A DNA stretch of 64,000 nt from Lytechinus pictus (taxonomy: Eukaryota). The position numbers and the translations under genes are program-made. Location of the stretch: contig NC_087247.1 in the NCBI RefSeq assembly GCF_037042905.1, positions 60,760,001 to 60,824,000 of the forward strand, given 5' to 3'. The notes below the pieces were generated by a model. It ran no database searches, was not told where the DNA came from, and saw nothing but the letters and a program-made list of their open reading frames with translations. Of the stretch, positions 7,616-56,000 are shown in pieces (the stretch's first letter is position 1; the number at the start of each line of letters is the position of its first letter).

Positions 7616-10600
7616 TAGTCCAGTAGATATGTGAAAAGGATGCTCGAATCTGGCAGAAAGTGTGAAATTTGGCACACAGGGGTATTTTTGGGCGCTGATT
7701 TCAAAAATTGCCGGCCCCAAGCGATTTGACCTTCGGGTCGGCCGCCATTTTGAAATCCAAGATGGCCGCCATGAAAAATCATTAAATGTCATTTTCTTGA
7801 GTTTTACATGGCATGTTATACTGAAATTTGGCATATAGGGGTATTTTGAGGCACTGATTTCAAATATTGCCGGCCCCCAGCAATTTGACAATTTGGCCGG
7901 CGGCTAAATGGCCGCCATCTTGGAATCCAAGATGGCCGCCATGATATATTATTGCAATCATTTTCTCGAGTTTTATATGAACTGCGGTATTGAAATTTGG
8001 CATATAGGCTTAATTTGGGGTGCTGATTTCAAATATTGCCAGCCCCAAGTGATTTGACCATCGGGTCGGCCGCCATTTTGAAATCCAAGATGGCCGCCAT
8101 GAGAAATCTTTAATGTCATTTTCATGAGTTTTACATGACGTGTGACACTGAAATTTGGCATATAGGGGTATTTTTAGGCACTGATTACAAATATTGCCGG
8201 CCCCCAGCAATTTGACAATTTGGCCGGCGGCTAAATGGCCGCCATGAAAAATCATTAAATGTCATTTTCTTGAGTTTTACATGATAGGCGACACTGAAAT
8301 TTGGCATATAGGGGTATTTTGAGGCACTGATGTCAAATATTGCCGGCCTCCAGCAATTTGACCTCCAGGTCAGCAGCAAAACGGCCGCCATCTTAAAATC
8401 CAAGATGGCCGCCATGAAAGATAATTTGCTCAAGTCTTACGTATGGCCTGTAACACTTTAAATTTGGAAAAAAACTTGATCTTTGCATCCTTGATCAATG
8501 AAAAGAACATAGTAAATAGATGCTATTTTGAATTCCAATATGGTTACCAAGTTTGAATGATGTTCAACATTATAATGGTGAGTAAAACCCATTGCATTGG
8601 CACTGAAAACAAATCCAACACAACCACATCTTTGTCCGTTGCAAGGAATTTGGCATCCTTAATTGCTGATATAGATGTTACGTAAGTATGAAGCACCATA
8701 GATACACAAACCAGCTAGCTTCTTCTGCAGTTACACATTTGAAGTGGCTTTGGTTGAATAATAACCATCCAGAACAATCATTTTCTGTTGAGAGGCTTTA
8801 AATTATTTCTTTGAGTTTTATATGATCTGCATTATTGCACTTTGACAAATCGACGGAGTGTGGGGTGCTTATTTCAAATATTGCTGGCCCTCAGCGATCT
8901 GATCCCGAGTCAGAGGCAAAATGTCAGCCATCTTGAAATCCAAGATGGCTGCCATGAAAAAAGATCATTGAAAAAAAATCACTTTATCTAGTATCACGTA
9001 ACGTATTATTTTAAAGTTTGGCACCTAGGGATATTGAAATTGCCCCCAGTAATCTGTCCAACAGATATGCTGCAAAATGGCCACCATCTTGAAATCTAGA
9101 GAGGGTAGACTGTCATGAAAATTCATTAAAATCATTTTCTTGGTTTTAAACAATTTGAGGCACTGCATTTTAGAAATACAGGCAGGATTTTGGCCCGCTT
9201 GTTTTAGAATATTGCTCCAATAATTGCAATATTTTATTACAAATCAACATGAAGAAAACTGCTCCAGACTTGAAGTACTGATGGTTATATAGTAGTATGA
9301 TGATGATGATGATGATGAAATGAAATTAATATTAATAATGGATGATAAAAATACATATTTTATTGTTCAAAATAGAATTCAGTAACAGAAATGCTCCGAA
9401 AATTTATTTTGCCCATACCCTGTAGATCGTGAGCCCGGCAGCAACTTAGCAGCGCGACATCGGACGTTGCTCTATCCTTTAAAAAGGGAGTTCACCCCAG
9501 AGAAAAGTTTGTTGTAAAAACAAAAGAAAATATGATATAAAAAAGATATTGGTGGATCCATCAAAGATATTAGAATTTTAAGTTTTTGATTTGTGACGTC
9601 ATATAGGCTACTGTACGAGCAGCTTTCCCATTATGTTGTGTGATATAAAATGCATAAATGGTTCATCGTGGGTATTTTTTTTTCTTTCTGGAGCGGGTGT
9701 GAAATCATTAGTTTGTTGATATACTGAGGGTCCAATAAAAAAACATTTTCATTTTTTGAGGAGGCTACATTTCATTGATTTTTGTACTTTAAGAAACATG
9801 GGGGAACTGCTTGAATCTGACGTCTCAAATGCACCAAATGAAATTCCAATAGCTTTTTAAATATTTGATGGAATTTCCTCAAACCTTCAATATTTTTTTT
9901 CATTATTTATTCTGTTATTGTTTCAATAAACTTTTTGTCAGGTTGAACTTCCTCTTTAATTCGTTGACCGCCAAACAGGTTAGAAGCAGCTCCCCTTTTC
10001 TAACATCTTTTGGTCTGATGCTGTCGGAGCTTGAACTCCCGATCTCCCGATTGTGAGGCGAACATGCTCCCATTGTCAGATTGTCGAACACACGATGGTT
10101 ATTCAAAAATGCCAAATTTCAAAATAATACCTACATTATAATTATGATACTTGATTTTTTTTTATGATTTTTTTATGGCAGCCATCTTTGATTTCAAGAT
10201 GGCTGCCATAAATTGGATGAACATTACTGGATTCGAAAGAAGTCTATGGAGATCACAGGAAAATCTCAGTTGTGGGCGATGCCGTCGAACTTAACACACG
10301 TGTAGAAAGCAACTCGGACGCCAAAAGAAAGCTTATTTTCTTTTCTTTTGACTGATGATACATATGTTTACTCACCATTGTAATGTTGAACATCATTCAA
10401 ACTTGGTAACCATATTGGAATTCAAAATAGCATCTATTTACTATGTTCTTTTCATTGATCAAGGATGCAAAGATCAAGTTTTTTCCAAATTTAAAGTGTT
10501 ACAGGCCATACGTAAGACTTGAGCAAATTATCTTTCAAGGCGGCCATCTTGGATTTTAAGATGGCGGCTGTTTTGCTGCTGACCTGGAGGTCAAATTGCT

Positions 10601-11698
10601 GGGGGCCGGCAATATTTGACATCAGTGCCTCAAAATACCCCTATATGCCAAATTTCAGTGTCGCCTATCATGTAAAACTCAAGAAAATGACATTTAATGA
10701 TTTTTCATGGCGGCCATCTTGGATTTCAAAATGGCGGCCATTTAGCCGCCGACCAAATTGTCAAATTGCTGGGGGCCGGCAATATTTGTAATCAGTGCCT
10801 AAAAATACCCCTATATGCCAAATTTCAGTGTCACACGTCATGTAAAACTCATGAAAATGACATTAAAGATTTCTCATGGCGGCCATCTTGGATTTCAAAA
10901 TGGCGGCCGACCCGATGGTCAAATCACTTGGGGCTGGCAATATTTGAAATCAGCACCCCAAATTAAGCCTATATGCCAAATTTCAATACCGCAGTTCATA
11001 TAAAACTCGAGAAAATGATTGCAATAATATATCATGGCGGCCATCTTGGATTTCAAGATGGCGGCCATTTTGCCGCCGGCCAAATGGTCAAATTGCTGGG
11101 GGCTGGCAATATTTGAAATCAGTGCCTCAAAATACCCCTATATGCCAAATTTCAGTGTCACATGCCATGTTAAACTCAAGAAAATGACATTTAATGATTT
11201 TTCATGGCGGCCATCTTGGATTTCAAAATGGCGGCCGACCCGATGGTCAAATCACTTGGGGCCGGCAATATTTGAAATCAGCAACCCGAATTAAGCCTAT
11301 ATGCCAAATTTCAATACCGCAGTTCATATAAAACTCGAAAAAATGATTGCAATAATATATCATGGCGGCCATCTTGGATTTTAAGATGGCGGCCATTTTG
11401 CCGCCGGCCAAATGGTCAAATTGCTGGGGGCCGGCAATATTTGAAATCAGTGCCTCAAAATACCCCTATATGCCAAATTTCAGTGTTACATGCCATGTAA
11501 AACTCAAGAAAATGACATTTAATGATTTTTCATGGCGGCCATCTTGGATTTCAAAATGGCGGCCGACCCGATGGTCAAATCGCTTGGGGCCGGCAATTTT
11601 TGAAATCAGCGCCCAAAAATACCCCTGTATGCCCATTTTTACACTTTCTGCCAGATCCGAGCATCTTGGCCATTTTTTGTCACATAACCGCTCCACTA
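7616..11698. mobile_element. Foldback-type non-autonomous DNA transposon (Academ-like) with long modular inverted arms
   Basis: TTA|TAGT ... ACTA|TTA (3-bp TSD). Arms about 7616-8585 and 10366-11698 are reverse complements built of about 328-bp units rich in GGCGGCCATCTTG / CAAAATGGCGGCC. The superfamily call rests on TAG termini and the 3-bp TSD. Confidence 0.8.
9483..9955. mobile_element. Kolobok-like MITE nested in the foldback spacer
   Basis: TTAA|aaagggagttcacc ... ggttgaacttcctct|TTAA. Confidence 0.65.
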
Positions 11699-17116: not shown

Positions 17117-18030
17117 GACACACACACCAAACACACAGAAAAAAATGTTGCCCCCCATTAAAAAGCAATGACCCACAGTGCCCCCAGGGAAAAAAAAGTC
17201 ATAGCTACGCCACNNNNNNNNNNNNNNNNNNNNNNNNNNNNNNNNNNNNNNNNNNNNNNNNNNNNNNNNNNNNNNNNNNNNNNNNNNNNNNNNNNNNNNN
17301 NNNNNNNNNNNNNNNNNNNNNNNNNNNNNNNNNNNNNNNNNNNNNNNNNNNNNNNNNNNNNNNNNNNNNNNNNNNNNNNNNNNNNNNNNNNNNNNNNNNN
17401 NNNNNNNNNNNNNNNNNNNNNNNNNNCATGGGGAATCGGGGATTAAATGTAAACTCTCTTCGGTTTTAAAGACTACTACAGGGGCCGCGGAACCGGGGGG
17501 CTGGGGGGCTTCAGCCCCCCCCCCCCCCCCACTTTTTCCAAAACCGTGTTCAAAAACGTAAAAATGACCATATGATTGTGATTTTTAGCATGGTCATGTT
17601 TTTTATAAGAATAAAGCTAAGAAGTAACTGTGAGGACTACCCCTTCCAAAATAAAATCAGCTTTGAGCGGCCGATCGGCCCCCCCCCCCCCTATTGGCGA
17701 AAGTTGGATCCGCCCCTGTGACACACACACCAAACACACAGAAAAAAATGTTGCCCCCCCATTAAAAAGCAATGACCCACAGTGCCCCCAGGAAAAAAAA
17801 GTCATAGCTACGCCACNNNNNNNNNNNNNNNNNNNNNNNNNNNNNNNNNNNNNNNNNNNNNNNNNNNNNNNNNNNNNNNNNNNNNNNNNNNNNNNNNNNN
17901 NNNNNNNNNNNNNNNNNNNNNNNNNNNNNNNNNNNNNNNNNNNNNNNNNNNNNNNNNNNNNNNNNNNNNNNNNNNNNNNNNNNNNNNNCGGGGATTAAAT
18001 GTAAACTCTCTTCGGTTTTAAAGACTACTA

Positions 18031-50000: not shown

Positions 50001-53000
50001 TCAAAATCTTTTACAATTAAACATAGAATTGAAAAAATGGTGACATCATCAGTTCCTCTTTTGCATATCATCCAATATGCACATATAACTGTTTCATGAA
50101 ATTAAGCAAAACTTATATGCTACAACTTCCTATTTCACATCAATCTTTGATGAAATTGTCAGTGCGAGGTTGGTTTTAATTTTCTCTATTTATCAAAATC
50201 AACTTATGGTAAAGGGTGGATTTGGCCTTTAAGGTGGATAATTTTGATATTAAGCATTACCATGATAGGTACAATAAAGTGCAACTTTACCATACTAGTA
50301 ATTTTTTTTCATGTAACAGAGACCAGATCCTCTAGAATTAGAATCAATCTAATAATTGATTGTAACATACATGTAGGCTTACAGAGATTTACTTGAATAG
50401 AATTAAATGACAAACATTTGTAAATTTCTTTCAGTCTTTTTGTTTAATCACAAATAAATATTTCTTTAATACACATCTCTTGATATTTAACTGACCATTA
50501 GTAACGGTTGTCCACTCCATTCGGAATCCTTCACCCGATGAGACTTCATCGGTTTTAAAGATGATGAAGAGCTGGTTACCAGATGATGTGAAGCTACTTG
50601 GAGCTACACTGCCACAGATTGGGTATTGACCAGAGATTTGAGGTGAATCGGGGAATCCCCCATTCCTTATAGACAGGTAGTCATATCCACAGTTAGGATG
50701 AGTCTCAATATCAAATGAAGTGAAGGTGTACTACGAGAGAATCAGAAATAAAAACAAAGACATGTGGAAATGATGTTAATTCTGCTGCCGTATTCTACTA
50801 CACTTCTAACACTAGATGATCACGATCTGCCATTTTGTTTTGTTGGATTACTAATCATGCTGCACAGGGTAGAGAATCCATGGATAGAACATGATCACTT
50901 GCTTCACTGGATCCACTGTTGAAGTAAGAAATTTCTTGAGATTAACATAGAATATCTGCAAGTCCAACTTATCTGCATCAACTAATAACAATTATGTGAC
51001 AAATCTCATGATAAAAATGAATAAAGAGATGAGTGACTTACAGTAATGGTTTCACCAACAGGAGCATCTATCCTCCAAGCACAATAGTCATCATGGTTAT
51101 AATCATTCGGGAAGTTAGGACTGGTAATAACACCAGATGTACCAGATACAATACCACCACAACCTGAAATCAGACAAAAATAATCAGCATTTTTATTATG
51201 TTGAAGAGGTGCATATAACTGTAAATATCAAAACAACGATCTATGTCACATACATTATGTTTCCATAGGCAAGGTTGAAATCCTTTTCAACATTTTTCTT
51301 TTAATGAATGATTGTCAACATGAACAGTATGTATTTTAAGATATGACAAGATAATTTGCCAGACCTCTTATTTGCCCTTCCCCCAAAATCTAAATCTAAA
51401 ATCTTAAATGTCAAGGAAATTATATTGGAGGATCAGAATGAGCAGAAATGGGCACACCTATATTTCTTTGGCCCATCTTTTTTTTTTTTGGAGGGGGAGG
51501 GTTGACATCATACATCTTGGTCACACTGCCAATGCGAGGATCTCCCTAGTATCAGTATTCTTGGCATTTACATGCTAAACACTTTCTTATTTGTACAATT
51601 TTTCTAAATCTTTCACTAATCGTACAGGATTTCAGTCTCCTTGGACTAAAAGAAAATTTGGTCACATGAAATCATTTCATGTTTTTGATTTTTTTATTAC
51701 AGGTTTTAATAAGTAATCTCCTCCAGATACTGCGGGATGATTTAACAGAGAGTATTAAGGGTTACCAACCTGATGCTTGATAGAGCATTCTAAATCCTTC
51801 ACCCACCACACTTCCATCAGTTCTAAATCTCAAGAAAGTTGTTTGAAATGGGATAAAGTATGGATTGGGAGCTGTTCTACCACAGAACCTTTCCAACTCT
51901 ACACCACTGCCATCAGGTCCTATAATCAAAGTATTTAAACACCATTATTAATGCTTTCCAACATTACAAAAATTCAAAACTCATTCATTTCTTTCTAAAA
52001 TAAAATGACACATTTTAACCCTAAAAGGACTGGGCTATTTTAGACGTACCAAGGACTGGTCTTGGATGCTGTTCATGAGATCACACCAAAATTTGGTAAG
52101 CACATTCTTTAACACGTAAACTACAAGCCAGTATAAAATAGAACTATTGAAATAATTATCTTTAATTATCAAATATAAAATATGTAAATTTATTCATGAA
52201 AAACATTATTTGCATATTCAACCCCCACTTTCACTTCAGATTTTCATTTTGTTTTCAGATGTCATCTTTGAAATCTTATTTAAAGGTTTTCACACAAAAA
52301 AAATTGCGAAAGCAAAACTTTTACCTATGTGTTTCTTTGTTTTTCTTGTGTCATTCGTTGTTTTTTTCATCTTTTTTTTTTTTTTTTCATGGGACCATTT
52401 AACAACTAAATTAAATCAATTAATTGAGCAGGCCAATAAAAATGAAATATAGTAACCATTCTAAGAATTTCATCTCCCATAGACGTATACAAAATATAAA
52501 AAATGAGTCATTTTAAAAATGAAATTGTCTCATAAAAAGTTATGTGGCATCGCAATGCTATACTCGTATGTTGCCCCATTTGGTCTCAGAAGTTGCACGA
52601 AACTTCAAAGAAAAAAGTCATAAAATAAGCTCTGGTGCTATCTTTCTGCATTTTGGAAATATTGCATGACACATTAAGAGGGGGGAGGGGGATGTCTCCC
52701 AACAGTCCTATTAGGGTTAATATCCCACTATTTTAGAGACAAGATTAATACACCAATGTATGTCTCAAGTGTTTTTCTTCATCTTCATTGTCTCAATCAA
52801 CATTATCATTGTTATCATCATCATCATCATCATAATCATCACCATCATCAACACCATCATCCTTTTGAAAAAGAACTCCCTTTCAAGTGAACTACTGATA
52901 TCAATATTGCAAAAACACCCCTCCAGGTTAATCACATACATTGATCGATAGAATAAGAAAATGTAAACTGGAAGACAGTAATACCTTCAAAAAGCTGAAG

Positions 53001-56000
53001 GTAGTCAAATGAGCAAGTGCTGTGAGATTCCAGATCAAAACCATCATCAAATGTGAGATAGAGAGAGCTATTTGTGTTTGCTGAGTTTCCCAAGGTCCAT
53101 TCACACATGATGTTGTTTGAATAGTTAGCTATACCATACTGAGGACTGAAGATATATCCTGATCCACCAGGTCCAACTGTGATCTGACCTCCACATACTG
53201 TAACAGTAAAACACATACAAAAAATTACACCATTAATGCATAAATACCGTTCAAAGGAAACCCAAAGGATGATTCGTACAGGCAGTTTGGCTTTATATAC
53301 CAGATTTATTTGATTGTTATTCATTGAGCCCTACGCCCAAGACGACTCATATTGGTGTCCATGAAAAATTTGCACGGTATCAAAATCGAGTTTTGTTTAT
53401 CCGGTTAACTAATATTCATGATATACATGAGAGAAGGACTTTTCCATAAATTCACTTCCTTATCATCTCCACAGTAAACTATGCAAGCACTAGTACATGT
53501 ACGTCACTCAATTGATACAAAGATCTGCTATTATCAACTGACATTTTAAACAGGTTTTAATTTGTAAACATACATATGTAGAATTTAAGTTTAATAAGGT
53601 TCAGTACATCTATAGTAGTTAACGTGGTATAGAGTTATGCCTAGCATTGAACTTTATGGAACATATCTTGGAAGAAATAAAGACTCAAAATAACTGGTCT
53701 AAAATTGGTTTCATGTGATATCAAGCAATCAATCAGTCAATCAGTCCAAAAATAAAGAGTTTTCTTAATCATCCTTACCTGATGCATCATTTGAATCATA
53801 GCGAGCTTGGAACCCTCGACCTGCAATAGAACCATCAGTACTGAAGACCACTCTCATGGTATTTCCACTTGAAGAGATCATATCAGGAGTGTCTGAACCA
53901 CATAGGGTATTCAGCAATGGAGAATTATCAGCTAAACCATTGTATACCTGTAAGAAAGGAACAAACCACATAGGGTATTCAGTAATGGAGAGTTATCCGC
54001 TAAACCATTGTATACCTGTAAGAAAGGAACAAACCACATAGGGTATTCAGAAATGGACAGTTATCAGCTAAACCATTGTATACCTGTAAGAAAGGAACAA
54101 ACCACATAGGGTATTCAGAAATGGACAGTTATCAGCTAAACCATTGTATACCTGTAAGAAAGGAACAAACCACATAGGGTATTCAGTAATGGACAGTTAT
54201 CCGCTAAACCATTGTATACCTGTAAGAAAGGAACAAACCACATAGGGTATTCAGTAATGGACAGTTATCAGCTAAACCATTGTATACCTGTAAGAAAGAA
54301 ACAAACCACATAGGGTATTCAGAAATGGACAGTTATCAGCTAAACCATTGTATACCTGTAAGAAAGGAACAAACCACATAGGGTATTCAGTAATGGACAG
54401 TTATCAGCTAAACCATTGTATACCTGTAAGAAAGGAACAAACCACATAGGGTATTCAGTAATGGAGAGTTATCCGCTAAACCATTGTAATGTATACCTGT
54501 AAGAAAGGAACAAACCATATAGGATATACAGCATTAGAGAGTTATAATTTAAACCATTGTATACCTCTAAGAAAGGAACAAACAACACAGGGGATTTAGC
54601 ATTGAATAGCTATCGGCGAAACCACTGTACACATGTATGAAAGTAACAATGATATACGATAGCAATAAACATGGTTTATTACAAATGATGAAATAATAAA
54701 TGCACTAGCATGAACATAAAAGTTGTCACCAATATAATTATAAAGCTCTTTTAATTAATCCATGCATTCAGAATGAGTCAATTTTTCATCCAGTCCCATC
54801 CAAATTTCCAACAATATTGTGTATCATTCAAGTATAAAAGTAAATCTTTTACTTTACCAATCTTTATTTATCTTAAATCGAATGCAACAACTAATAACAA
54901 TTGAATGTAAACCTACCTTAACTGAGTCATAGGTACAGACTGTAGCATCTTCAATATCAAAGTCATCAAAGTAAAGATTAATAAGATGACCAGTTTGAAC
55001 AGTAATACGCCACTCACAAATCCTGGAGTGTGTGTATTCATTAGGATAGCTAGGTGATGAGAAAGACCCTGTAGCTGATACCAAGTCTCCTCCACATTCT
55101 GAATAAAAAAAATATCAAAATCAAATAACAATACGACCAATTCTGTTTATTTTAACTATAGTTTGAATAATCGACCATGTGGAAGCAATATTTGAGATCA
55201 AGGGTTTGTTGCGGAGAGGGTTGAAATCACATCTACCTCTAAAAATCATATGCAACTTGATTTACAACCAATCAGAAGTCTACATTTCCCATTTTTCTTT
55301 CTTTTCAGAATTGTCTTAATATGCTAAACTATTTGTAAGAAATTTAAGAACATATAAAGCATGCATTGTTTATGTCTCCTAATTCAAACTTTGCTTAAAT
55401 GAAACAAATATCTCACAAAGCATTTTAGTTGGCATATTTGCCTATAAGCTATCTGAAGACAAAGAAAGTTCCACCTGAAATATACTTTAATCCCAATCAT
55501 ATGAAAGAGCTTAATATGCTCTTTCATTTGATACCGAATTCGTCATGGTAGTATTTATATTTCTGAAGATATTTGGCAAGCAAACAAATTTCACTGAATT
55601 CCATGGGTGTATGTAAACTTTCGGCCTAAACTGTATATTCATGTGCTCATTTTACATGTATTAATGTGATTTTGTTATCAGTATGGGGTTAATTATACAA
55701 GCAGTTGTGCTTCCTTTGACCCTTCCACATGTGAAATATATTTTAATGTTAATAATTTGTATATATAATTTTAATTGTGGAAATAAAGGTGAAATTAGAT
55801 TTGAATTTTCATTCAATAGCAAGGTCATAATACATAATCATACATGTACAACTACATAGTTATATTATACTTAATGATCTAGGCCAGTATGACTTTACAT
55901 GTAAAATTATAAAATGTTGGAGGTAACAAAATGACAAAAACTTAACATCAAGAATGAAATATTTTTCTTAAAGATGTAATGTAAATATAACAGTAATCAT

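Follow-up and report, generated by a model that had tools for sequence, protein, structure and literature searches.

The window analysed here, a stretch of 64,000 nucleotides from Lytechinus pictus, the painted sea urchin, is identical (100%) to the locus of XP_054751040.2, a cubilin-like protein of this species. A preliminary description made from the DNA letters had named the gene as cubilin and placed the feature of interest in its 18th CUB domain (CUB18), and this assignment holds. In the protein, EGF repeats precede 27 CUB domains; it is orthologous to named cubilins, with cubilins from urchin to vertebrate as its top matches, and the count of 27 N-terminal CUB halves puts the exon in question in the 18th. 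The domain is split between two exons on the minus strand. Exon A (54917-55098) encodes the N-terminal half (Pfam CUB positions 1-60, E=3.5e-18), is entered in phase 1 and left in phase 0 with its last codon AAG ending at 54917, and matches residues 2396-2457 of the L. pictus cubilin-like protein P0152 at 100%. Exon B (53779-53947, 169 nt) encodes the C-terminal half (Pfam CUB positions 61-110, E=4.5e-10), is entered in phase 0 and left in phase 1, and its protein is identical between L. pictus and L. variegatus.

We scored splice sites with position weight matrices (PWMs) built from cubilin itself, comprising 167 donors and 167 acceptors; in the motifs below, a slash marks the exon border. 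The donor of exon A, AAG/gtaggt (54911-54916 on the minus strand, positioned by spliced alignment), reaches 10.7 bits and the 78th percentile among the cubilin donors. Exon B is followed by the donor CAG/gtaagg (53773-53778, minus strand), which at 12.5 bits and the 96th percentile is as strong as had been described. According to the locus comparison, the two exons enclose a minus-strand intron of 969 nt (53948-54916). Cubilin introns have a median length of about 606 nt and a minimum of 167 nt, and the exons measure about 150-200 nt.

The 3' end of this intron is occupied by a tandem array of 11 units of 68 bp on the minus strand, located at 53896-54651 of the window. TRF reported a single array at 53896-54649 with a period of 68, 11.0 copies, 91% matches, and a score of 1190. 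With head-to-tail copies and a unit within 10-100 bp, the array qualifies as a minisatellite and is a candidate VNTR. Alignment of the units confirmed the composition proposed earlier: on the minus strand each unit reads gtttgttcctttcttacag/GTATAC...CTATGTG, with 19 nt from the end of the intron joined to the opening 49 nt of exon B. When up to three mismatches were allowed, we found the 26-nt junction word GTTCCTTTCTTACAGGTATACAATGG 10 times, always within the array, and never in 100 shuffles. The confinement of this word to the array excluded a dispersed repeat or transposon as its origin, as did Blast against other loci, where the orthologous site was the sole match. An Rfam scan of 52500-56000 returned only a sub-threshold snoU30-like match in the next intron, and the plus-strand open reading frames within the array are repeats of 33-61 aa without significance.

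In the order of transcription, all on the minus strand, the array begins with the oldest copy, u0 (54584-54651), which retains 74% identity to the true unit and has a destroyed acceptor (acat/G, with no AG). The second old copy, u1 (54516-54583), is 85% identical to the true unit, and its CAG has become GAG (54565). This GAG acceptor scores 5.2 bits (8th percentile), and G at position -3 is found in 0 of the 167 real acceptors; a neighboring TAG/AG, 2 nt upstream, scores 8.4 bits. By unit alignment, u2 (54443-54515) is the first decoy with an intact CAG, the G of its AG lying at 54497, and is lengthened to 73 bp by a 5-bp insertion in the exon-derived portion; its acceptor reaches 13.9 bits (PWM) and the 97th percentile. 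Seven 68-bp decoys follow, u3 to u9 (53967-54442), with 96-100% mutual identity and the G of their CAG at 54424, 54356, 54288, 54220, 54152, 54084, and 54016. The last unit, u10 (53899-53966), is the true copy, in which the final 19 nt of the intron (CAG, with the G at 53948) run into the opening 49 nt of exon B. It can be recognised by its T at +24 and its G at +33, as well as by GTTCAGAC starting at +50.

Could the copy number be an artefact of assembly or have been inflated by repeat misassembly? One L. pictus assembly was examined, three of its units are identical (u4, u7, and u8), and look-ups found no independent contigs; exact look-ups of the 68-aa open reading frame over exon B and of the 35-aa frame in the array gave no recorded match. 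On the other hand, the copies vary in a structured way, through the 5-bp insertion and G/T, C/G, and A/T sites, and the units differ at at least six positions in a non-periodic pattern that includes the 73-bp variant. Neither the window nor the L. pictus reference locus contains runs of N at this place. Because of this structured variation, and because the outer units have orthologues in the independently assembled L. variegatus genome, we regard an assembler artefact as highly improbable.

The count of eight upstream units with an intact pyrimidine tract and CAG, given in the preliminary description, proved exact. These eight decoys score 13.9-14.7 bits (97-98th percentile of the 167 real acceptors), equal to the true site. 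Each has a 50-nt AG-free zone and a T(A/T)CTGAA motif at -31, and most units also have CTGAT at -48. At the motif level, each decoy thus comprises a complete 3' splice-site module, with a tract ending in YAG, an AG-free zone, and a branch-like motif 18-50 nt upstream. Between the candidate branch motif at -31 and exon base 23 the nine CAG sites do not differ, and over the first 49 exon bases they are nearly alike. Since they share branch motif, tract, AG, and a near-identical exon start, the choice of acceptor must come from farther downstream.

Splicing to a decoy would have a uniform outcome, as had been predicted. When the phase-0 donor of exon A is joined to any upstream unit, the reading frame meets a stop within 7-32 codons: each of u3 to u9 gives ...LFLSYRYTMV followed by a stop, and u2 gives a stop after 6 codons. 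Reading in frame across three units (204 nt) was considered and rejected, because a stop lies already inside the second unit. RefSeq models of both Lytechinus species (P0152 and P0001), which may rest on homology, join DSVK/VYNGLADNSPLL... at the last copy. Clustering at 90% grouped the cubilin protein with only three short Logan fragments, all of which read through into introns, are therefore genomic, and come from other exons; no alternative isoform was among the cluster members. Searching with CUB17-19 of the L. pictus protein for fragment-sized entries retrieved no Lytechinus cDNA pieces. Junction reads can distinguish the copies only when they reach at least 24 nt into the exon.

Comparison between species dated the array. 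There are 11 copies in L. pictus, three in L. variegatus, and one in S. purpuratus. The L. variegatus array consists of u0, u1, and the true unit only, with the same CAT and GAG lesions, and its u0 orthologue is 88% identical. The eight perfect decoys, u2 to u9, are absent from both other species. Since the additional units of L. variegatus are only the old ones and S. purpuratus is single-copy, the eight decoys represent a recent expansion within the L. pictus lineage. At 969 nt, the L. pictus intron is longer than its counterparts of 444 nt in L. variegatus and 453 nt in S. purpuratus, and the eight extra units account for the excess. As to how the repeat arose, slippage at a shared TGTGGTT microhomology had been suggested; TGTG belongs to the repeat unit itself, so that only the 3-nt GTT is independent evidence, and the flank that preceded the duplication is no longer recoverable.

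Compared with the L. variegatus exon, the true copy shows synonymous changes only, whereas the decoys carry non-synonymous changes (S to C, L to F) and the 5-bp insertion; coding constraint is seen on the last copy only. The proposal that exon definition picks the last copy is consistent with this absence of non-synonymous changes and indels and with the RefSeq joins. L. pictus-specific and L. variegatus-specific amino-acid changes number 9 vs 7 downstream of the array and 17 vs 13 upstream, which suggests that constraint on CUB19-27 is not relaxed in L. pictus, although the young age of the expansion leaves this test with limited power. Pseudogenisation of cubilin in L. pictus was excluded by the intact 27 of 27 CUB domains, by a protein identity of 98.4% to L. 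variegatus vs 86-94% in sampled flanking introns, and by the unrelaxed constraint downstream of the array.

We consider the array to be most likely a tolerated, probably mildly costly, intronic minisatellite that is resolved by exon definition. It arose when 68 bp across the 3' splice site of the second CUB18 exon were duplicated in tandem. Such an acceptor-spanning tandem duplication always keeps the last copy contiguous with the remaining exon, so the gene stays intact and each extra copy becomes an intronic look-alike of the acceptor. Two old copies predate the split of L. pictus and L. variegatus, their acceptors having decayed, and the eight recent L. pictus copies are still perfect. Productive mRNA would come from the last copy. 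The most plausible basis for this choice is exon definition by the remaining 120 nt of exon B together with the very strong donor 169 nt away from the true acceptor, and such a mode suits the architecture of the gene, given its intron and exon lengths and the 96th-percentile donor of exon B. Some splicing probably does go onto decoys, giving stop-containing transcripts that nonsense-mediated decay would remove, and in that case the array would be slightly costly and not a device built for regulation. Counting against the preferred explanation, the decoys match the true site on the acceptor matrix and are transcribed earlier. In a human BRCA1 duplication across an intron/exon border, the cDNA kept the duplicated part of the intron (PMC11839443), and by analogy heavy use of the decoys may occur here as well.

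The preliminary description had also offered copy number as a rheostat on productive cubilin mRNA, or as the source of a truncated receptor without CUB19-27. In its full form, copy number or splicing factors would tune the amount of productive mRNA or of a CUB1-17 receptor through regulated unproductive splicing. Nine acceptors of equal strength in series, each decoy leading to a premature stop with many exon junctions downstream, would suit such a device, and human tandem-repeat length is reported to be associated genome-wide with splicing variation (PMC10078293). The comparison between species nevertheless points the other way: the eight decoys are unconserved, the older units have lost their CAG instead of being maintained, and CUB19-27 is equally constrained in the two Lytechinus species. 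The cubilin cluster contained no alternative isoform, and equivalent arrays, described below, are scattered over unrelated borders in other species. The claim therefore found no support, and we judge regulation of this kind to be very unlikely.

Another possibility is that the decoys are used in passing. Units u2 to u10 all present AG/GT as CAG/GTATAC, which makes the array dual-specific at the level of motifs. A splice from exon A to a decoy would recreate AAG/GTATAC as a weak donor able to splice onward to a later acceptor, or 68-nt pseudo-exons could be included or removed, and the resulting ladder would mostly resolve into the correct mRNA. As donors, CAG/GTATAC and AAG/GTATAC score 7.0 bits (31st percentile of cubilin donors) and 6.3 bits (22nd percentile), within the range of real cubilin donors (minimum 3.1 bits). 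In the human UBC repeat, AGGT sites serve as both 5' and 3' sites and produce a ladder of isoforms, and expansions of such repeats have been argued to be less harmful because they are removable by splicing (PMC10809524); tandem duplication around AGGT is reported to be able to yield a working intron (PMC3265369). GTATAC, however, lacks the A at +4 and the G at +5, the latter present in 73% of real donors, and the 68-nt unit is far shorter than the shortest cubilin intron of 167 nt. Moreover, a splice at the true junction regenerates this donor too, as it does in S. purpuratus, with no known consequence, and GT follows 29% of cubilin acceptors anyway. We therefore regard recursive or dual-specific splicing as quite unlikely. 

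Cryptic decoy exons drive intron retention in human erythroblasts. By the same logic, the strong acceptors and weak GTATAC donors could bind U2AF/U2 and U1 unproductively, which would lead to retention of the intron and lower output with no decoy junctions. The 68-nt units do have an acceptor at the 97th percentile on one side and a donor at the 31st on the other, but the decoys are not conserved in L. variegatus or S. purpuratus, and we find this explanation extremely improbable. A broader proposal is competition in cis among the nine acceptors, whether strict exon definition decides it or re-splicing in steps at AG/GTATAC (a 68-nt ladder). The number of units would then set the productive fraction, and cubilin dosage would vary heritably with copy number among individuals. 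We hold this proposal to be unlikely as a whole.

Similar splice-site-bearing minisatellites recur in echinoderm cubilins. We found four further tandem repeats of this kind at other exon borders in the cubilin loci of L. variegatus, Diadema, and Anneissia, including a 191-bp unit in three copies in L. variegatus, a 136-bp unit in three copies in Diadema, and a 50-bp unit in 11 copies in the crinoid Anneissia, the last being a donor array and the mirror image of the L. pictus array. In all four, the annotated protein uses the exon-contiguous copy. Border-spanning arrays are nonetheless about five-fold depleted, with 5 observed (5 loci) vs about 24 expected under random placement, and this argues further against a rheostat. 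Depletion together with recurrence fits the reading of the arrays as tolerated but costly. Gene predictors and short-read junction mappers may place junctions arbitrarily within such arrays. The age of the decoys, the constraint on the last copy, the unrelaxed CUB19-27, the RefSeq joins, and the four additional echinoderm arrays are the new elements of this analysis.

Several known systems resemble the array in part. The dual-specific AGGT repeats of human UBC and VCX3A also carry AG/GT in every unit, so that expansion multiplies the sites, and such expansions are argued to be tolerated because extra units can be omitted from the mRNA (Duan et al., 2024, PMC10809524). The UBC unit, however, is 228 nt long, a multiple of three and a whole protein module, giving isoforms in frame, whereas the alternatives offered by the 68-nt unit of L. 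pictus are all out of frame with a stop, and the last copy alone is coding. Use of the donor is demonstrated in UBC (PMC10809524), while the GT side in L. pictus is a weak candidate donor, GTATAC. Tandem duplications involving AGGT or a border (Hellsten et al., 2011, PMC3265369) and the potato RdRp case (PMC4974935) likewise supply complete splice signals in one step and leave the original mRNA possible. In those cases a new intron arises within an exon, whereas in L. pictus an existing intron grew from 444 to 969 nt and gained signals that are redundant and compete with the original ones. Intronic VNTRs and spl-TRs are also genic repeats with units of tens of bp whose copy number may affect splicing, most known examples acting through an enhancer, a silencer, or spacing (PMC10078293), unlike the L. 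pictus unit, which is itself a 3' splice-site module with candidate branch motif, tract, and AG.

Pathogenic duplications across an intron/exon border in human genes, such as the BRCA1 partial exon 10 duplication, likewise involve a duplicated acceptor and exon start, and beyond the BRCA1 case we found little literature on duplicated acceptors; use of the upstream copy in BRCA1 brings an intron-derived insert, a frameshift, and a stop (PMC11839443). That case is a single 2012-bp duplication in a patient with a demonstrated aberrant transcript, whereas L. pictus has a multi-copy 68-bp array, known from DNA, in the reference genome of a healthy species.

Two well-known classes of splice sites provide a further contrast. 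Ratchet points of Drosophila and vertebrates are conserved sites in very long introns, with a donor half that is strong and resembles GTAAGT. The L. pictus decoys share with them a 3' splice site abutting GT and a donor that would be regenerated after the first splice, but their intron is shorter than 1 kb (969 nt), their donor half appears weak, and neither L. variegatus nor S. purpuratus has them. Poison exons and other forms of unproductive splicing coupled to nonsense-mediated decay are typically highly conserved and regulated. In both poison exons and the decoys, an alternative splice choice brings in a premature stop and would send the mRNA to decay; the decoys, by contrast, are lineage-specific and repeat-derived and give no sign of maintenance, u2 to u9 being specific to L. 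pictus and neither u0 nor u1 retaining its CAG in either Lytechinus species.

A clean choice of the last copy would demonstrate that sequence beyond 49 nt downstream of the acceptor, namely the exon body and the next donor, can override eight upstream acceptors that match the true one in all local signals and precede it in transcription. Were the choice not clean, the array would be a heritable, length-variable drain on the mRNA of a large endocytic receptor. Since L. pictus is amenable to laboratory culture and genetic manipulation, and a series of 1, 3, and 11 copies is at hand in S. purpuratus, L. variegatus, and L. pictus, the question of acceptor choice is directly testable. Should competition in cis prove to be true, the array would imply, together with the crinoid donor array of 11 copies of 50 bp, that echinoderm spliceosomes pick the exon-contiguous copy among many identical sites.

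The gene was identified through a half-domain search, which found a 3658-residue cubilin-like protein of L. variegatus with 27 CUB matches; the cubilins of L. pictus and S. purpuratus are members of its 90% cluster. Across the 1.8 kb that were compared, the window matched the L. pictus locus of XP_054751040.2 with 100% identity, and the relatives range from echinoderm to mammalian cubilins. On its minus strand, the window carries cubilin from CUB13 to the C-terminus, and the domain at the array is CUB18 of the 27. The exon for its N-terminal half (exon A, 55098..54917, minus strand, Pfam CUB positions 1-60) ends in ...GTT AAG in phase 0 and is followed by the donor gtaggt from 54916. The exon for the C-terminal half (exon B, 53947..53779, minus strand, 169 nt, Pfam CUB positions 61-110) is continuous with the last array unit (53966..53899, minus strand) and is followed by the donor gtaagg (53778..53773, minus strand), at the 96th percentile of cubilin donors in a position matrix. 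The introns of this gene have a median of ~606 nt, none being shorter than 167 nt, and its exons measure ~150-200 nt. This architecture is vertebrate-like.

The L. pictus RefSeq model (P0152) is without the first 85 residues of the L. variegatus protein (P0001), a difference probably owed to incomplete 5' annotation; the N-terminus lies outside the window. The four N runs (140-218 nt), at 2311-2700 and 17214-17988, fall outside the gene body analysed. A snoU30-like C/D-box match in the intron after exon B (52743-52829, minus strand) stayed below the gathering score of 45, at 25.7 bits (E=0.13). The match overlaps an (ATC)22 microsatellite at 52796-52861 and is probably due to chance. Downstream of the gene's 3' end, the window has one satellite-like array of 146-170-bp units (GGCCGCCATTTTGAAATCCAAGATGGCGGCC...) at 7740-8391 and another at 10526-11633. 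The two are in opposite orientation and may represent an inverted pair or a satellite derived from a transposon.

Tandem Repeats Finder reported a single array at the junction, at 53896-54649 on the minus strand, with a period of 68, 11.0 copies, 91% matches and a score of 1190. The in-register unit on the minus strand reads gtttgttcctttcttacag/GTATACAATGGTTTAGCTGATAAC.CTATGTG (the slash here and below marking a splice junction) and joins 19 nt of intron end to the first 49 nt of the exon for the C-terminal half-CUB. The preliminary description had given this same composition and was accurate in every detail checked. A 26-nt word spanning the junction occurred 10 times with at most 3 mismatches, 10/10 within the array and none elsewhere in the 64 kb; 100 shuffles gave 0. 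The minisatellite is real, confined to one lineage and built of neatly ordered acceptor modules; it adds an instance to the known class of splice-site-bearing tandem repeats, or border-spanning tandem duplications.

To grade the sites, three urchin cubilin proteins were mapped to their own loci by spliced alignment, and the 167 donor/acceptor pairs so resolved served to build the position matrices. Numbering the units u0 to u10 from 5' to 3' along the minus strand, the true acceptor in u10 (CAG, G of AG at 53948) scored 13.9 bits, the 97th percentile. The eight upstream look-alikes u2-u9 (CAG, G of AG at 54497, 54424, 54356, 54288, 54220, 54152, 54084 and 54016, minus strand) reached 13.9-14.7 bits, the 97th-98th percentile. 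The oldest unit, u0, has CAT in place of AG and is not an acceptor. In u1, a GAG scores 5.2 bits (8th percentile), and 0/167 real cubilin acceptors have G at -3. The same C>G change, at 54566 (minus strand), that converted CAG to GAG also created a TAG/AG site 2 bases upstream (8.4 bits, 40th percentile). L. variegatus has this site too, so tolerance of a medium-strength decoy predates the species split. Whichever upstream unit exon A is joined to, a stop follows after 7-32 codons, mostly ...CGLFLSYRYTMV and then the stop.

Every site is preceded by an AG-free zone of 50 nt, lying within the exon-derived part of the preceding unit. A T(A/T)CTGAA motif in this zone places its A 31 nt from the AG, and most units also have CTGAT at 48 nt, so that at the motif level each unit is a self-contained 3' splice-site module. 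The candidate branch region of the true acceptor is now supplied by decoy u9. Over 23 nt downstream and ~50 nt upstream, the true site cannot be told apart from the neighbouring ones. Both RefSeq models, of L. pictus and L. variegatus, read DSVK/VYNGLADNSPLL...GSDTPDM, with the junction at the last copy. A short junction read can separate the true copy from the decoys only if it covers 24 nt or more of the exon, and such annotation support as exists may be ambiguous.

At the array site, L. variegatus has only three units, corresponding to u0 (same CAT), u1 (same GAG) and the true one, in an intron of 444 nt versus 969 nt in L. pictus; S. purpuratus has one copy and an intron of 453 nt. Between the two Lytechinus species, u0 and u1 are 88% and 95% identical, and the flanking intron 86-94%. 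Within the L. pictus array, u3-u9 are 96-100% identical to each other, with u2 at 89-93% identity to these seven. At a position with G in u0, u1, the true exon and L. variegatus, all of u2-u9 carry a derived A or T. Together, the orthologous units, the unit identities and this derived base point to an old duplication before the species split, the copies of which have since decayed, and a later gain of eight young units on the L. pictus branch. Slippage at a shared TGTGGTT microhomology had been proposed as the origin of the repeat. Of this, only the 3-nt GTT remains as evidence, the TGTG belonging to the repeat unit, and the left flank of the ancestor can no longer be recovered.

A synonymous AAC>AAT is the sole difference between the true copy and L. 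variegatus, and the decoys carry the non-synonymous changes TCT>TGT and TTA>TTT and a 5-bp insertion. Coding constraint acts on the last copy only. The two Lytechinus proteins share 3515 of 3572 aligned residues (98.4%). With S. purpuratus as outgroup, lineage-specific amino-acid changes (L. pictus:L. variegatus) numbered 17:13 upstream and 9:7 downstream of the array, so constraint on CUB19-27 is unrelaxed in L. pictus. A mainly truncated receptor is disfavoured by this result, although the young age of the expansion limits the argument. The earlier idea that copy number acts as a rheostat on productive mRNA, or yields a receptor lacking CUB19-27, found no support: the eight decoys are not conserved, the older units have decayed, and downstream constraint is not relaxed.

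Better supported was the other branch of that proposal, exon definition, although the mechanism itself is inferred. Since local signals are identical, discrimination would have to come from farther downstream. Most likely, judging from general knowledge of splicing and nonsense-mediated decay, the exon B donor would pair across the exon with an acceptor and favour the nearest copy, at 169 nt, over the decoys, which lie at 237, 305 and further distances of up to 718 nt. Some leakage to decoys would produce stop-containing RNA, to be removed by nonsense-mediated decay. A second possibility for resolving the array is that AG/GTATAC serves as a dual-specific site. Its donor score of 6.3-7.0 bits falls at the 22nd-31st percentile of the gene's real donors, and in human UBC, AGGT sites in tandem repeats work as both 5' and 3' sites, expansions of AGGT repeats being argued to be tolerable because they are spliced out (PMC10809524). 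However, GTATAC is weak at donor positions +4/+5, every species carries AG/GTATAC at its true junction, and GT follows 29% of the acceptors of this gene anyway. Exon definition by the exon B donor remains the likeliest mechanism.

Intersecting the TRF output with resolved junctions revealed further splice-site-bearing repeats. In L. variegatus (L001 75995-76566), a 191-bp unit is repeated three times at the acceptor of the CUB23 second exon (first exon bases: true 76533, decoys 76153 and 76344). All three acceptors read ttag/ATT at the 74-80th percentile, and splicing to a decoy brings a stop ~11 codons beyond the junction. L. pictus (L002 56771-56973) and S. purpuratus each have one copy of the unit. 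In Diadema setosum (L004 57256-57665), three 136-bp copies at the acceptor of the CUB18 first exon (true 57659, decoys 57387 and 57523) carry tctag/TTTGTGG, the array ending a few nt into that exon. The crinoid Anneissia japonica (L005 9406-9960) has 11 copies of a 50-bp unit that combines the final 15 nt of an EGF exon with 35 nt of intron. After the true donor at 9420 come six further CAG/gttagt and one CAG/gttaga. This row of decoy donors mirrors the L. pictus acceptor array. In every such array, the annotated protein uses the exon-contiguous copy.

Tandem repeats with a period of at least 10 occupy 3-5.5% of the five cubilin loci (L001-L005), and among 560 resolved exon borders, 5 lie inside such repeats versus ~24 expected at random. 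Border-spanning arrays thus arise repeatedly and can be tolerated, yet are ~5-fold depleted, which fits a mild cost better than a function. The L. pictus array gives no evidence of function, but as a natural experiment in a tractable urchin it is well suited to testing how splice sites are chosen.
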